A DNA stretch of 63,611 nucleotides, the filler included, from Hyphochytrium catenoides (taxonomy: Eukaryota > Protista > Hyphochytriomycota): assembly GCA_900088475.1 (NCBI GenBank). It is 6 parts of 6 records of this genome, joined end to end, with 100 filler letters (N's around TTAATTAATTAA, not from the genome) between each part and the next. Parts side by side here need not be neighbours in the genome. Positions count along the whole stretch, not along the records: positions 37,225 to 44,624 come from FLMG01001243.1; 5 more parts are not named here. The stretch is one strand, 5' to 3'. The notes under the pieces are model-generated. The model was not told where the DNA came from. It worked only from the letters and a program-made list of their open reading frames with translations, and did no database searches. Position numbers and translations under genes: made by a program. Shown one piece after another: positions 37,225 to 44,624 of the stretch (its first letter is position 1; each line of letters starts with the position of its first letter).

Positions 37225-37464
37225 GAAGGGAGGTTAATGAGAGCGGAGTCTCTCTCTCGTTCTCTCTCTTTCTCTCTCTCTTGTTGGAGTCGTCTCTTCT
37301 AGATGGAAGAGTGAGTTGTGACGCAAGGACAAGGAGAGGAAAGATATTCTCTTTCTTTTCTCTTGTAATAAAAAGAATGTCTCTGCTTTCTGCGTGATGA
37401 GCTAGGAACTAGCGGCTGCGGACGTGAGGAGGGGAAGAGAGGAAGCGAGATACTGTTGAGACAG

Positions 37465-37518
<54 letters not shown>

Positions 37519-37808
37519 AAAAGAGAGAGAGAGAGAGACAGAAGAGAGAGAGAGGAGAGAGAGAGAAGAGATCAATTGACAGTAAAAAAGAAGGAAAAAG
37601 ATACGTACTCTCCTCCTCCCCTCTCTGGCCATAAACAGTGAGTCCACCCCCAACCCAGGGTACCGAGGGTACTCCCCAGCGTAAATGACAATTATAAACC
37701 TCTGTTTCTAGGGGTGAGGACCCTCACCTACCTTAGTGCGTATATCTTAACCCTCACATCCAGAATAATGTATACCATTNNNNNNNNNNNNNNNNNNNNN
37801 NNNNNNNN

Positions 37809-37845
<37 letters not shown>

Positions 37846-38179
37846 GAGAGAGACAGAAAAGATACAGAAAAGAAAGTAAGAGTGAAGATGCAGATAGAAG
37901 AGAAAGAAAGGGGAAGGTACTAAAGATAACGACGAGTGACGAGAGGAGTAGAAAGAGAACAGAGACAAAAAGAGAGCAGGGACAAAGAGAGAAAGAAGCA
38001 CTCAGGAAGACAGAGAGAGAGAGAGGGACCAATGAGAAAGAGAATAGGCTAGTGACACTAGATAGGGAGAGATTGAGCAAGAAGTCCCTCCTTCCCCAGA
38101 CATTGGCTCTAGCGGAGAGAGGAAGAGAGGGAGGGAGAGAGAGAGGAGAGAGAGAGAGGAGATATTGCCATCTCCCTTT

Positions 38180-39455
38180 CTAAAGGCTTCTCCGAGAAGA
38201 GGAGGAGGACGACGCAGAAAGAGAGAGACTCGTACTGGAGAGATGGTACGGAGAAGAATGAAGAGAGACTTCTCCCACTGCTGGCACAAGCTCCCCGAGT
38301 CCTTCTCCTCCAAAAGAGAGAAGAGGATCAATCTCAAAAAGTTCTTCTCCTCTCTCTTCCCTAAGCTTTCCTCCTGCAGCACTGAACCAGCGCTTATGAA
38401 CCTTGCTGACCTGCTCACACACAGTCTCCGGAGAGTCCATCCCTCCCCCAGGCGGAGAACGGACAAAAGCACACTCTTCCTCTCTCTCCACCTCTAGCAC
38501 TGCCACCGTGAGAGGAGAGAGAGAGACACGCGCGGCAGGAGGAGAAGGAGAGAGTGCGGGAGACGAGGGAGAGAGAAGAGACGCGGAAGAGAGAATGTCT
38601 GTGAAGCGCGCTTGGAGAGAAACCCCGTTGTTTACTGTGGGTTTGGCGCTATTTCCTTTGTCATCCGCATAGTTTATCATCCCGTGCTTGGCGCGATAGT
38701 TCAACTTCGCGTTACTGGCTGCGTGCTCTAGTGCCTCGCTTTGTTAGGCAATGGGGGAGAGAGAGAGAGAGAGAGAGAGAAGAATGAGAAGAGAGACACA
38801 CACAGAGAGAGAGAGAGAGAGAGAAAATCGAGGGAGAAAGGAGCGAGATGTCGAGATCTAGAGCTCAGAGAATGAGAAAGAGTATGTAGTGCAGTAGGTA
38901 TGGGTGTTTTAAGTTGGGAGAGGAAAGAAGCGAAGAAGAGACCAAAAGTTGAAAGCGTAGTAGAGAAGAGCAAAGCAGAGAGAAGAGAGAGACGGAGAGA
39001 GAGGGAGAGAGGGGGGAAAGAGAGAGACAGAGACAGAGAGAAAAAGAGACGAAGAGAGAGGTAAGAGAAGTAGACGGGGGGAGAGAGAGAGAAAGAAGAG
39101 AGAAAGAGACGGAGAGAGAGAGAGAGAGAGAGAGGGGGCAAAGAGACGGAGGGAGAGAGAGAGCGCGCGTGCCAAAAAAAAGACACACACAGAGAGAGAA
39201 AGAGTGGGCTTACAATGTGAAAATGTAGCTGTTGATGTCTCCTGGGCCGTTAGCAATCTCCTTGACCGCCTGCTCCACCTGCAGAAGCTGCTCTGTCTTC
39301 ACTTCTCTCCAGTCCACGACAGCCAATCTTCCTCCTCCTCCCTCAGCAGTGCCGGTCTCTCTCTCTACGAGGACATCGAGTGGCTCCTCTCCTCTACTTC
39401 TTGGCGCCATCTTCAGGGAGCAGTCCGCACCTACCGAGAGAGAAGAGTTTATGGT

Positions 39456-39496
<41 letters not shown>

Positions 39497-42400
39497 TAGA
39501 GTTAGACAGATAAACAGTTAAGTCGAGAGAGGGAGACAAAGGCAGAGCGCAAGAGAGAGAGGAAGGAGGAGATACAGATGGAGCAAAGAGGAGAATGACG
39601 AATGGATTTCAAAAAGAGGCTGGAAAAAAAGAGAAGAGCGGAAGCTAAGAAATGGGAAAGACAGAGAGAGAGAGAGTCAAGCTACCGCACCTCTTTCTAT
39701 ATGAAACCCTAAGAAAGCTGGGTCAGCTACTCTGCAGAGAACATTCTCTACCGTGCAGATGTGTACATATTTCGTTCCTCTCTTTCCTCCTTCTCTCTTC
39801 TTTTTCTTCATATCTTCTAACACTCTGTCATGCAGAAGCCCGTCAATGAGCCCTCCGCTGCCGAGAGAAGAGAGAGAGACACGCGATGAGGTTTCCAAAA
39901 TGATCTTTCCGCTGACCGAGAGAGAGGGGAGAGAGCCTTGAGAGAAGAAGACAACTTGTTCCTCTCTCAGATCGAAAAAATTTCTCTCGTTGAAGAACTT
40001 CCTCAGCGTCAAATCGTTCTCCGCTGTCGTCATAATGTACCACGTTATCAGAGGAGTCTCTTCTCTCTCTTCTCCTCCTACTATCCCTTGTTCTCTCTTT
40101 GCAGCCTCGGGAGAGAGAGAGAGAGAGCGGGAGAGACACTCGAGTCTTCTAATTCTGTCTGCAAAGAGATGGAAGATGCTCTTTCTAGAAGGGAGGCCGA
40201 TATTAAACATTCCAAGAGAGATGCGATAGCTCTCTAGAAACTCTTCTTGTGCAGAGAGAGTGATGACGGCGACCTCTCCTCTCCTTATCGCTTCCAGTCC
40301 TCTCTTTTCCAGTCTCTCTCTCTCTCTCTCTTCATAGCTCCTGAAGCTGTGATAAGTCCGTAATGGCTGCAGGAGAGAAATAGAAAGACGACTCTTTCTT
40401 GAGCTCTTCATTGCGTCCAAATAGTGCATTCTTAGACGCCTAAGATCCACAAGTCGGAGCTAGAGAGAGAAAGAGAGGAACAGATGAGAATAGAAACCCA
40501 TGAGAGAGAGAGAGAGAACGGGGAGGAAAGAGAGAGAGAGAGAGAAAGAGGGAGAGAGAGAAAGAAAGAGAGAGAGAAGAGAGAGGTAATTGTTGGAAGA
40601 GCCCAACAAAATGAGAGAGAAATGAAGCTTTGAAGTGCTCCCGGCGTACAGAACTCCTCTCGGCAGAAAGATAAATAAGAGAGACTAGAGAAAAGAAGAA
40701 GCAAGAAGAGGAAAGAGAGACTGAAGGAGCTATCACGTCGTACTTGAGAGACCAAAGTGTCCATCTCCTCAGGAGAGAGCAACCCAGCGTCCGCAAACTG
40801 CCCAAANNNNNNNNNNNNNNNNNNNNNNNNNNNNNNNNNNNNNNNNNNNNNNNNNNNNNNNNNNNNNNNNNNNNNNNNNNNNNNNNNNNNNNNNNNNNNN
40901 NNNNNNNNNNNNNNNNNNNNNNNNNNNNNNNNNNNNNNNNNNNNNNNNNNNNNNNAGAGGAAACAATACTGCTCCATCTATGTAATCTCTTAGTGTTTTT
41001 GACTCTTTTCTCCCTCCTTTTCCCCTCTGGGCATCGGCGTTCTCTCTGCCCTTCGCTCTTTCTTTCTCTCTCTCTCTCTCCGCCTTTCTCTTTCTCTCAT
41101 GTCTCTAAGCGTGGCCCAACCTTACCTTGAAGACATGCTGCTGGCCTGCCGCCATGTAGCGCTCTCTCAGATTCGCAGGAATCTCGGCCTGGGTTTGAGA
41201 GAAGCAGAAAGACACATCGAAAGAGAAGACACCTTCATGAGACTGCTCTTTCTCAGATAGAGAGGAAGGAGGAGGAAAGGGAGAGAGAGAGAAGAGAGAA
41301 AGAAGCAGAGCAGAAAGAGGAGGAAAGCGATTGAAGGCGTCACATTCCAGGGCAGGAATTTTCAGGACCAGGCGCTAATAAAGACCCGAAGCAAGGGCTA
41401 ACGGTCGTGATATCAAGGGTGAAAAATCGCGCACGCGAGAGAGAGCAAGAGAGAGAGAGAGCAAATAAGAGAGAGAGAGAGAGAAGAGGTGAGAGAGAAT
41501 ATGCAAAGCGAAAGATATGACGCTAAAAGGAAACCCACCGGTAAGACTCTTAGGATAAGATGGGCACCAGAATGATTGGCTCTCTTCAGCTCCAGCGCAT
41601 CGGCGCACTCATCCAGAAGCATTTCTGAATGAGGTGGAGCACGGAGCTTTCTTCTCTCTATCAGCTGAGCCAGGGCCATCAAGTGGTCAGGAGAAGAGAG
41701 AGAGAAAGAGTATAAGGCTGCCTTAATGTCTCTCTTGCTCGCATTTTGAGAGAGCACAGGCGGTGACACCAACGACACAAGGATTCCTCCATCTTTCAGC
41801 ACTCTGTAGGATCCATCATGGACTTTCTCTCCCACTGTGTCAATAACAGCATCGACGCCTCCTCTTTTCTCTCTCTCTCCTGCCTTGAGATCATCTTCTC
41901 TCTCTGCTGCATGGACGATATCTTCATAGCTCTGCCTCTGATAGTCAATGACGAGATCTGCGCCCATTCTCTTCATGATTCCTGCCTTCTCCGCCTTGTC
42001 AACGCCATAGACAAAGGCTCCTGCGGCCTTGGCAATCTGTATGAGGAAGAGTCCCATGCTGCCTCCTCCTCCCTGGATCAACAGCTTACTTCCTCTCTTC
42101 ACTCCCGCGAGAGAGAAGAGAGACGTCCAAGCCGCAGAGGCATAGAGAGGAACCGTCGCAGCTTCAGCAGAAGTCATCCAGCGAGGAACGTGCACCACTC
42201 TCTCCACAGGGACAGCGCAATACTCTGCATAACTCCCACTCTTTCTCTCTCTCTTCCCCCGTCCATCTTCCCCTTCCCCGTCCGTCTCTCTCCTGGCAAT
42301 GTCAGTTAGAAAGAGAACACGGTCATTCTCACAAAAACCGCGCACTTCGGCCCCCACTCTTGCCACCAAACCAGAGCCTTCGATGCCTGGAACTAAAGGG

Positions 42401-43212
42401 TAGCACACATCCTGCCGAGAGGAGAGAGACTCCAAGAACTGGAGAGAGAGCGAGAGAGAGAGAGAGAGAGAGAGAAAGTCGATGCGTTGCAAGAGTAGCA
42501 AGAAAAAGAGGAAGATGGAGGCAGAAGAGAGTTGGTCAGTGTACGAAGGAGAGAGACTATAGGAAGGCTCCCAGAGATGAAGAAAAGGCTGGAAGCCATA
42601 GAGAGAGATGACACAGCTATGCCAGGAACCTATAAAGAGACAGAATCCGAGCGACTCTTACTCTTTCTTCTCCTCTCTTCTCTCAGTCTCCCTGTCTTTC
42701 CTTCACGTTCTTGTTCTCCACCCTTTCTATATCTCCCCCGTCTGTCTTTCCCTCGCTTTCTCTCCCCCTTCTCGCCGTCTCTCTCTCTCTCTCTTCCTTA
42801 CTATTGCCCCTCCTCTCTCTCTCTCTCTCTCTCTCTTTTTCTGCAGCTCTCACCTGACAATCAGCTCTTGTTAAGCCGCAGAAAAGCACTTGGACCAGCA
42901 CCTCGTGGGACGAAACAGAAGGAATAGGGTACTCCTCCGTCATTTGCACCTGCGGAAGTGCCTCTCTCTCTCCTTCTGTTTCCTTCTCTCTCTTTCCTCC
43001 CTCGACCTCAGTCTTCTCTCTCTCTCCACTCTCAATATACGCAGCCTTCATTGTCTGAGAAGAGACAAACTCCATCCCTCCTACAACTCTCGGTGGCTGG
43101 CTGAAGGATGCCCGACGCTGAACTCGAGGCGTGAGATGAAAGGGAAGAGTGAACTTCTTCCCCTTCAGCTCTTCCAGTCCCTCGCCCGCGAAGGAACAGA
43201 TGGGGGAGACCT

Positions 43213-43254
<42 letters not shown>

Positions 43255-43864
43255 ACAGAAAGACATTGACTGTAAGGTAAGGCTACGAGAACGCTACGAC
43301 ACGAATCTCGGACGAGCCAATGAACGAGAAAGAGAGTGAGAGAGAGAGAATGAGAGACGGAGATCGAAGAGAAAAGGCGAGGAGAGAAGAGAGAGGACAG
43401 AGAATATGATTTATGTCTAAAGAGAAGAAGAGGGACAGGGCAGACACTAGCCACGTGGGCAATGAAGAGTTTCAATGAGGGGAAGAGTGAGAACAGGCAA
43501 ATTTTCACGGTCAGTCACTTTCTCTTGGACATAGCTCAAGAGGCGTTAAGCGAACGATGTAGAGAGAGAGAGAGAGAGGGCAAGAGAGAGAGAGAGAAGA
43601 CAGAGAGAGAGAGAGTGTGTTGCTGGTAGTATAGAGAGGGCCCCAACTCGCCTCACAGAGTCTCGAGCCCACATTCTTGGGATCCACTCCTGCGGCAATA
43701 TTGTTGAGCCACTTTGTTTGCTCCTCCTCAGTCTTCAGAGAACAATAGAGAGACCGCCCACTGGTGGTGCCACAACAGAAACCAAAGGGATAAGCAGAGC
43801 TTTCCTCGTTCCACACCTACGAAGGGAAACAAAGAGTTATTACGAAGTAAGAGAAATCGAAGGG

Positions 43865-43915
<51 letters not shown>

Positions 43916-43920
43916 CAGAC

Positions 43921-43964
<44 letters not shown>

Positions 43965-44183
43965 GAAGTAGAACTTGAAAAATAGACAGAGAGAGTAGAG
44001 ACTAGAGGTACGCCAGAGACGTGAAAAGGAGAGAAAAAGAGAGAGGCAGATAGACAGAGAGAAAGAGACGGATAGAGAGAGAGAGAGAGAGACGGACACA
44101 GAGAGAGAGAAAGAGACTGGAGAGTACCCTTATGCCAGTGAGGTGAAAGAGACACACAGAGAGAGAGAGACAGAGAGATAGAA

Positions 44184-44214
<31 letters not shown>

Positions 44215-44624
44215 GAGTGTACCTCTACGCTAGTGACAATGTATCTGGCCTTAGGTGCCTTTCCCTTCTTCCTCTCGGAAGCGTCCTGATAGTACTCATA
44301 GCTGTTCGTGATCGCATCGAAGACAGCATATCTGCTCTTCCACATCCTGGCCATAGGAGGACAGAGGGAATTGAGAAAAAGAGAGAGAGAGAGAGTGAGA
44401 GAGAGAGAGAGTAAGTCTGAGAAAGAGAGACAAAGAGAGTAGAACGGAAGAAAATGCTCTCAGACATCAGCGCAGACACTTAGAGAGTTGGGTTATTGAT
44501 GCTACGGAACTCTCAAGCAGAGTAAACGGCAAGGCAGTGACCCCACAATCTTTCTTCTCTCCCTTCTCTTCCTCTCTCCCCCTCTCTTCTGTCAGCTGCA
44601 CTCTCGCTCTCGCTTCACTGCTCG
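38180..44624 (-). CDS. 5'-truncated multidomain gene: PH domain, UAP1 C-terminal tail, MDR/quinone-oxidoreductase domain, full-length degenerate UDP-GlcNAc pyrophosphorylase domain
   Basis: Exons 44624-44480, 44346-44223, 43816-43652, 43210-42854, 42438-41539, 41188-41126, 40797-40744, 40459-39691, 39430-39214 and 38738-38180 splice in frame with no stop. PH: MWKSRYAVFD..YEYY..KTEEEQTKWLNNI. UAP tail: LCE|VSPICSFAGEGLEELKGKKF. MDR: MKAA..EVLVQV..YPLVPGIEGSG..LIQGGGGSMGLFLIQIAKAAGA..VDAVIDTVG. UAP-like domain: AGQQHVF..IGLPSRKSIF..WYIMTT..VADPAFLGF..EIDPLLSFGGEGL. Confidence 0.8.

Follow-up and report, generated by a model that had tools for sequence, protein, structure and literature searches.

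A locus of Hyphochytrium catenoides raises the question of whether a sugar-nucleotide pyrophosphorylase domain has lost its catalytic motifs, kept its scaffold, and nevertheless been retained. The window, that is, the whole stretch of DNA that was analyzed, comprises 63,611 nucleotides (nt), filler included, from assembly GCA_900088475.1. The piece examined here is positions 37225-44624 (FLMG01001243.1), and the coding strand of the fusion gene that it carries is the minus strand, on which all exon and motif coordinates below lie. Our subject is the UAP1-like domain UAP(b), encoded at 41188-38180, which the original prediction held to be a selected but inactive domain. The label "domain" was apt, as UAP(b) appears to form the C-terminal part of a PH-QOR-UAP fusion, the first UAP of which is located beyond the piece. 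The central claim, that the catalytic motifs are lost and the scaffold kept, is well supported by alignment to human AGX1, retention of conserved columns, profile matches, and AlphaFold2 (AF2) modeling with Foldseek comparison. Overall, we consider it probable that UAP(b) is a catalytically dead C-terminal domain with the UAP1 fold that is maintained as a non-catalytic module of the fusion. Every search, profile match, alignment, and tree reported here used single exons as queries, exon by exon.

Where the family carries the signature L-x2-G-x-G-T-R-[LM]-x4-P-K (GGxxTxxGxxxPK), UAP(b) has the degenerate loop ITLSAQEEFLESYRISLG (40264-40211), which does not match it; a gapless HMMER alignment to human AGX1 places the loop, LSAQEEFLESYRISLG, on L108-G123 of that enzyme. 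The other motif losses listed in the original prediction also proved real, namely SLGSGG (39868-39851) and VEN (39751-39743) in exon 3, VDWRE (39317-39303) and GDINSY (39242-39225) in exon 4, and CAFVRS (38473-38456) in exon 5. Relative to AGX1, the loop carries T114F together with G110A, G111Q, R115L, G117S, P121S, and K122L; the latter six, along with K407R, would deprive UAP(b) of the glycine-rich nucleotide loop and of the basic residues that handle phosphates. K407R was found in a multiple alignment with 13 canonical domains, as were N223S, D253E, G290D, E303D, Y304W, N327D, and F383T, which would alter most of the sugar and uridine contacts. The substrate-binding positions listed in PMC9332809 are 108, 110, 111, 165, 196, 220, 222, 223, 251, 252, 289, 290, 303, 304, 327, 383, and 407, and at the 16 that are near-invariant in the references, UAP(b) keeps three (M165, Q196, and G222). 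Because the glycine loop, the phosphate-handling basic residues, and most of the sugar and uridine contacts are changed, UAP(b) almost certainly cannot make UDP-N-acetylglucosamine (UDP-GlcNAc), and we predict from its sequence, with high confidence, that it is without uridylyltransferase activity. Alanine scanning by Mio and colleagues in 1998 reportedly found the Gly, Arg, and Lys of the motif to be essential for activity.

The structural stretches quoted in favor of a retained scaffold are all present: IGLPSRKS (40201-40178), WYIMT (40042-40028), VVFFSQG (39955-39935), VADPAFLGF (39730-39704), and EIDPLLSFGGEGL (38335-38297). UAP(b) is encoded by five exons within 41188-38180, separated by four GT-AG introns in compatible phases, and the absence of stops and frameshifts was borne out, with 1662 nt of exon making 553 codons plus a stop and no internal stop. 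Two of the exon boundaries were adjusted by eye, by 1-2 nt. A UAP profile of 492 nodes was built from 14 UAP domains, the 13 canonical ones and a degenerate domain called P0173c that is described below; the five exon peptides tile nodes 3-487 of it, in order and without overlap. Exon 1 (41188-41126; AEIPANLRERYMAAGQQHVFK) covers nodes 3-21 and exon 2 (40797-40744; FADAGLLSPEEMDTLVSQ) nodes 22-39. Exon 3 (40459-39691; nodes 41-266, E 8e-64) encodes the end of the N-terminal helical part and the first half of the Rossmann-like catalytic core, including the degenerate loop, SLGSGG, and VEN, and both of its other frames are full of stops. Exon 4 (39430-39214), with EPLDV, VVDWRE, and GDINSY, is the most degenerate, giving a weak but collinear match to nodes 269-327. 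Exon 5 (38738-38180; nodes 340-487, E 1.7e-23) contains SLQARFTD, ECAFVRS, DSPETV, EIDPLLSFGGEGL, and SPYHL, and closes with a low-complexity tail and the stop codon TAG (38182-38180).

An assembly gap (N) at 40807-40955 falls inside intron 1. The donor of exon 1 is AAG/gtaagg at 41125 (slashes mark splice boundaries), the acceptor cag of exon 2 lies 9 nt from the edge of the gap, and the two exons align without gaps to Aphanomyces HVLKFYQAGKLTNAEID and "...QDHVLKFYQAGKLTNAEID". As node 21, the last in exon 1, is followed directly by node 22, the first in exon 2, the gap is intronic and no coding residues are missing. Runs of (GA)n/(CT)n of at least 8 nt make up 16% of the piece 37225-44624, the plus strand of which is 59% purine, and this bias extends into the exons, where it takes the form of in-frame inserts of Ser/Leu and of Glu/Arg/Lys (SRSLSLSPEAAKREQGIVGGEEREE, KKKKREGGKRG, SLLSPSSPALSPSPPAARVSLS, and the tail STSLSLSASSSSSSRRSL). 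The low-complexity inserts of exons 3 and 5 were also considered as short introns, an interpretation that was rejected: they lack GT...AG boundaries, and the exon 3 insert is present as well in L001, an independent Logan contig (SRR28521206) from a close relative whose protein is 97% identical.

Exon 3 matches Pfam PF01704 (UDPGP) with 28.9 bits (gathering cut-off 22, E 6e-7) and mouse and human UAP1/AGX1 at E 1.6e-33 to 6e-33, and in the PDB exon 5 matches the insect and fungal UAPs 8yp3 (1.4e-9) and 4bma (1e-7). Exon 4 alone found no match in PDB or Pfam and scores 5.5 bits against the profile, and exons 4 and 5 taken singly fall below the Pfam threshold for PF01704. Across the five exons, the full three-part UAP layout of N-terminal helices, Rossmann-like core, and C-terminal domain is collinear. 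An AF2 model of the exon 3 peptide, driven by its 52-row alignment, reached a predicted local distance difference test score (pLDDT) of 87.2 and a predicted template modeling score (pTM) of 0.85, with low confidence confined to the degenerate loop and the lineage-specific inserts. When this model was used in Foldseek, the top 47 chains were all UAPs, with AGX1 (1jv1) best at E 7.5e-18. As modeled, then, UAP(b) keeps the UAP1 fold.

Degenerate domains of this kind appear to be rare but not confined to this locus. Three were found among 238 loop-spanning UAP domains scanned: UAP(b) with its near-identical match P0001, the third UAP domain of P0173, and P0080. P0173 (ENA ERZ23491423, scaffold_590; L002 3001-8235) is a metagenomic UAP-PH-ADH-UAP-UAP protein of 1744 residues in a single intact open reading frame (ORF), and in its third domain, P0173c (residues 1290-1728), three in-frame deletions have removed the loop and the HKKIP and PVKN blocks. 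P0080 (L004 880-3123, on a 3347-nt Logan contig from SRR27444708) is a stand-alone UAP-like protein of 747 residues with an N-terminal hydrophobic segment; it has the degenerate loop LTLAAYETPLLGHSGPLG as well as VLDHSK, GDICSH, and EYAPVRR, and its source is not GA-rich. An ESM Atlas look-up of P0080 returned generic UDPGP clusters only. UAP(b) and P0080 co-deviate at 27 near-invariant columns and have the same residue at 10 of them (G110A, Q112E, R115L, K122L, Y>F, E303D, N327D, N>S, F>L, and K407R), whereas 2.1 identical replacements are expected under a BLOSUM62-based null (P=3.5e-5) and permutation gives a mean of 1.56 (P<5e-6). Whether it arose by descent or by convergence, such a shared pattern is hard to reconcile with random decay. 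The N-terminal halves of Albugo proteins were considered as further degenerate UAP domains and rejected, as they are not UAP-like.

A search of 1.84 billion representatives with exon 3 matched P0001, many ordinary UAPs, and two long Aphanomyces astaci proteins; among the best 150 of 1865 matches (E<=0.001), P0001 stood at 97% identity and the next at 40% or less. A word search with exon 3 likewise found no sequence between 97% and 37% identity, the search with exon 5 gave no match, and the sole match in a metagenome scan for orthologs was a bacterial canonical UDPGP (L003). As orthologous sequence, these searches added nothing to the contig L001. In trees of exon 3, UAP(b) sits on a very long branch of odd composition, its length about tenfold the median, beside Anaeramoeba and Cyanophora, a position to be read with a warning of long-branch attraction; P0080 pairs with P0173c (support 92/75), and UAP(b) with Anaeramoeba under the same warning. 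Approximately unbiased (AU) tests rejected neither a clade of UAP(b) and P0173c (p=0.47) nor one of UAP(b), P0080, and P0173c (p=0.35). On these trees, we assert neither that UAP(b) is orthologous to domain b or c of the fusions nor that the degenerate domains form a clade of pseudo-UAPs.

The 13 canonical domains have 100 near-invariant columns, and constraint on UAP(b) was judged on these; it keeps 52. Retention is uneven: the ligand and motif positions drawn from PMC9332809 are kept at 3/16 and the other columns at 49/84 (Fisher p=0.005), or, counted by whole motif, 10/36 inside and 42/64 outside (p=0.0004). Leaving out columns that are canonically S, L, E, or R, the residues favored by the GA/CT-rich genome, gives 3/15 ligand positions versus 37/66 others (p=0.02). 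Since neutral decay should strike ligand and other columns equally, these losses look unlike it. The UAP(b) branch shortens from 2.0 to 1.2 substitutions per site once the motif columns are dropped. A comparison with one relative over one exon, using the 1154-nt genomic contig L001 with its introns, found no indel in the 768 nt of exon 3, although microsatellite-like runs are present there, versus four in approximately 330 aligned columns of the flanking introns (p=0.008). A relic reading would see in UAP(b) a C-terminal domain made dispensable by the N-terminal UAP and drifting under the GA/CT bias without having yet acquired a stop. A neutral sequence so diverged should show stops, frameshifts, or broken splice sites, and none occur in 553 codons and four introns; together with the uneven losses, the confinement of indels to introns, and the specific replacements common to P0080, this leads us to regard simple decay as unlikely, though it accounts well for several features of the exons. 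S, L, E, and R together make up a fraction of 0.47 of the residues in exon 3 and 0.44 of those in exon 5; the gene's own ADH exon stands at 0.33, and canonical UAP domains stand at 0.25-0.33. Of the 48 invariant columns that changed, 19 have turned to one of these four residues. Several microsatellite-like, low-complexity in-frame inserts interrupt exons 3 and 5, which like the S/L/E/R replacements fits relaxed constraint; exon 4, at 5.5 bits, is barely recognizable and keeps only 4 of its 18 near-invariant columns, and the tree branch is about tenfold the median. Against L001, exon 3 shows 11 substitutions, seven non-synonymous (five of these amino acid changes in lineage-specific inserts or linkers) and four synonymous; the resulting dN/dS, 0.52, does not differ significantly from 1 in the direction of constraint (p=0.29). 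The trees, moreover, recover no clade of UAP(b) with P0080 or P0173c, so that the shared replacements could be convergent; the active N-terminal UAP partner, beyond the edge of the piece, is assumed; and an AF2 model of a canonical tandem UAP-UAP from Phytophthora kernoviae, made to look for intramolecular pairing, reached pLDDT 78.6 and pTM 0.68 and does not establish that the two domains pack together. All of this weighs against a selected module. The claim that UAP(b) is selected is thus supported indirectly: the intact frame and splice sites, the concentration of loss at ligand sites, the distribution of indels, and the shared replacements speak for it, while the dN/dS does not. We hold with moderate confidence, on these sequence comparisons, that selection has kept UAP(b), most likely as a retained non-catalytic module.

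Retention could also reflect a new or altered activity, in which a remodeled pocket (D303, W304, D327, R407, S223, and E253) binds a sugar phosphate or nucleotide sugar and catalyzes either another reaction or the usual one through other residues. Within the pocket, six replacements are conservative (E>D, Y>W, N>D, K>R, N>S, and D>E), whereas those in the nucleotide loop are radical, a contrast that may leave room for residual ligand binding, and the set D303, D327, R407, L115, L122, A110, and E112 recurs in P0080. However, the glycine loop and the Lys/Arg pair are present in every solved UDP-sugar pyrophosphorylase, the 47 top fold matches in the PDB are all canonical UAPs, no alternative catalytic residues could be identified, and G290D places a carboxylate in the sugar site, which makes neofunctionalization of this kind a rather remote prospect. 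That a degenerate loop is merely mimicked by faulty assembly, an error of frame, or incorrect exon modeling over the N gap is scarcely credible, even though the sequence comes from a short draft contig that has two N gaps and a (GA)n/(CT)n content of 16%: the exons tile the profile with no node missing, and the loop is real rather than an assembly artifact because neither alternative frame encodes GGQGTR there and the loop DNA is letter-identical in the independent contig L001.

Under the preferred reading of a retained non-catalytic module, the gene would run from a UAP1 mostly off the piece, through a PH domain set in the C-terminal loop of that first UAP1 and a QOR-like MDR domain, to UAP(b), which selection would maintain without catalysis. 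UAP(b) would then probably be a structural partner, or a ligand-sensing one, for the catalytic UAP at the N-terminus of the same polypeptide, a role modeled on GMPPA, which regulates GMPPB, and on the large subunits of ADP-glucose pyrophosphorylase, which regulate the small subunits. Drawn as it is by analogy, a function as regulator, sensor, or partner is speculative. A broader and rather doubtful conjecture is that UAP(b), P0080, and perhaps P0173c represent an old, undescribed subfamily of UAP-derived pseudoenzymes with an alternative site (A110, E112, L115, L122, D303, D327, and R407), which would act as a sensor of hexosamine-pathway metabolites controlling the catalytic UAP, either fused to it with PH and QOR-like domains or as a stand-alone, membrane-anchored protein.

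The domains preceding UAP(b) lie in order on the same strand, as judged by Pfam and by blastx collinearity with P0173 and the Aphanomyces astaci fusion P0003. The first PH-domain exon (44348-44223; RMWKSRYAVFD...IVTSVE) matches P0173 residues 415-456 in blastx, and the second (43816-43652; VWNEESS...GSRLCE) has a weak Pfam PH match (E 0.088) and is collinear with the PH domains of P0003 and its longer relative P0002. An exon at 43210-42854 (VSPICSFAGEGLEEL...LPFHLT) encodes the C-tail of the first UAP and the start of the ADH domain. It is 60% identical to P0173 506-540 and also matches P0003 596-693; the body of the first UAP lies beyond the edge of the piece at 44624, and its visible part is the C-tail VSPICSFAGEGL. 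The main ADH/QOR-like (MDR) exon (42411-41539) matches ADH_zinc_N (7e-15), ADH_zinc_N_2 (4e-14), and ADH_N (3e-8) in Pfam, and its C-terminal end matches P0173 766-818. The QOR/MDR-like domain keeps the dinucleotide-binding motif GGGGSMG and scores well in Pfam, unlike the adjoining UAP(b). The ADH exon end ...LILRVLP/gtgggt joins the UAP(b) exon 1 start cccag/AEIPANL, both in phase 0, and the resulting VLP/AEIP junction matches the P0173 linker RIRPSSIP ("...FVVRIRPSSIPDQI") without a gap. Because these phase-0 GT-AG junctions match the linker lengths of the single-ORF homolog P0173, we infer that UAP(b) is the C-terminal domain of one fusion gene encoding a single polypeptide.

The fusion gene has at least eight introns. 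One of them, after the second PH exon, is a candidate GC-AG intron with its donor at 43651-43646, bounded by CTCTGTGAG/gcgagt (GAG/gcgagt) ... cttag/GTC, and the remaining introns are all GT-AG. The PH domain sits in the C-terminal domain of the first UAP, between "...W....GG" and "CEVSP..S..GEGL" (P0003 residues 486-584), in what we take to be the loop that carries the 17-residue alternatively spliced insert of human AGX2; the AGX1 alignments end at residue 452, directly before this loop. In blastx, no third UAP domain was found in the 950 nt downstream of UAP(b) (37225-38180). A second short N gap lies downstream of the gene at 37781-37808, and any third UAP domain would be off the piece.

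The two long Aphanomyces astaci proteins, P0002 (1888 residues) and P0003 (XP_009839287; 1447 residues), are built alike, with a UAP, a PH domain set ahead of the C-tail of that UAP, an ADH/QOR-like domain, and a further UAP; P0002 adds a third UAP. A word search with P0003 found this architecture in all Saprolegniales sampled and in metagenomic P0173, and the Saprolegniales proteins are annotated as UDP-N-acetylglucosamine diphosphorylase. Having this rare architecture in common points to an oomycete-like stramenopile as the source of UAP(b), an affinity that the exon 3 trees do not confirm. Peronosporales and Pythiales have UAP-UAP tandems of approximately 984 residues with both sites canonical (P0174-P0185: Phytophthora, Pythium, Peronospora, Plasmopara, and Lagenidium); the first tandem domain groups, with weak support, with domain b of the Saprolegniales fusions in the tree, and the second falls near domain c. 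Our literature searches found no description of tandem, fused, or otherwise multi-UAP proteins in oomycetes, nor of a UAP-fold domain that is non-catalytic and has its signature motif replaced.

Chitin, N-glycans, and glycosylphosphatidylinositol (GPI) anchors all draw on the supply of UDP-GlcNAc, and in fungi, insects, and parasites the UAP enzyme is a drug target. For the GDP-mannose and ADP-glucose pyrophosphorylases, regulatory paralogs that are inactive are already known, and the view of UAP(b) as a pseudoenzyme of the sugar-nucleotide pyrophosphorylase family, residing in an oomycete-type multi-UAP fusion, is partly supported by our data. If UAP(b) is a regulator, then enzyme and regulator would form a natural pair, genetically linked through the fusion, and the replacements shared with P0080 would provide a pseudo-UAP signature searchable across eukaryotes. 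If it is instead a relic, it clearly illustrates how a domain can decay within a living gene that is exposed to a strong microsatellite mutational bias.

A comparison of UAP(b) with known systems shows a domain that is familiar in its fold and unusual in its site. It shares its fold and domain order with AGX1/UAP1 (1jv1), mouse 1vm8, Aspergillus fumigatus 4bma, and Spodoptera frugiperda 8yp3, exon 3 matching AGX1 at E 6e-33 with approximately 33% identity over 214 aligned columns, and like these solved UAPs it has IGLPSRKS, WYIMT, VVFF.QG, VADP.F.G, and EI.PL.S.GEGL. Unlike them, it has another sequence in place of the signature L-x2-G-x-G-T-R-L-x4-P-K, differs at 13 of the 16 ligand or motif positions listed, carries extra low-complexity inserts, and is embedded in a fusion. 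The rare domain order and the junction lengths of that fusion are those of the Saprolegniales proteins (Aphanomyces, Saprolegnia, Achlya, and Thraustotheca; approximately 1450-1960 residues). Identity to these is only 30-34%, most of them carry a third UAP domain, and their genes appear as long ORFs rather than as an intron-rich gene; their UAP domains, in contrast to UAP(b), all keep GGQGTRLG..PKG, DGNGG, VDN, VEYSE, and F.PVKN.

Of the other degenerate domains, P0173c has the highest identity to exon 3 (38-40%) and is likewise a degenerate C-terminal UAP in the same type of fusion, with V289L, G290D, A>G, and the block RIRRLE.LS.S in common. It differs in that its motifs were lost by deletion and not by substitution, in keeping PKG, EYS, and GNICNH, and in being the third domain of its fusion rather than the second. 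P0080 shares with UAP(b) a degenerate loop and the ten replacements at an overall identity of approximately 36%, but it stands alone with an N-terminal hydrophobic anchor, comes from a genome that is not GA-rich, and lies apart in the trees. Human UAP1L1 is a paralog of UAP1, 59% identical to it, and, unlike UAP(b), is a stand-alone vertebrate protein; a chimeric UAP1L1 structure (8qh2) is among the fold matches of the exon 3 model, and UAP1L1 presumably keeps the signature motif. UAP1L1 is reported to work outside the hexosamine pathway, acting through OGT (PMC11119800, citing Lai et al. 2019). GMPPA is a non-catalytic paralog that binds GDP-mannose and restrains GMPPB (PMC11228364). GMPPA differs from UAP(b) in its family (NTP_transferase plus hexapeptide), in being a separate polypeptide, and in having a demonstrated function, and the likeness is one of analogy only: UAP(b), too, would be a protein of pyrophosphorylase fold without catalysis beside an active partner.

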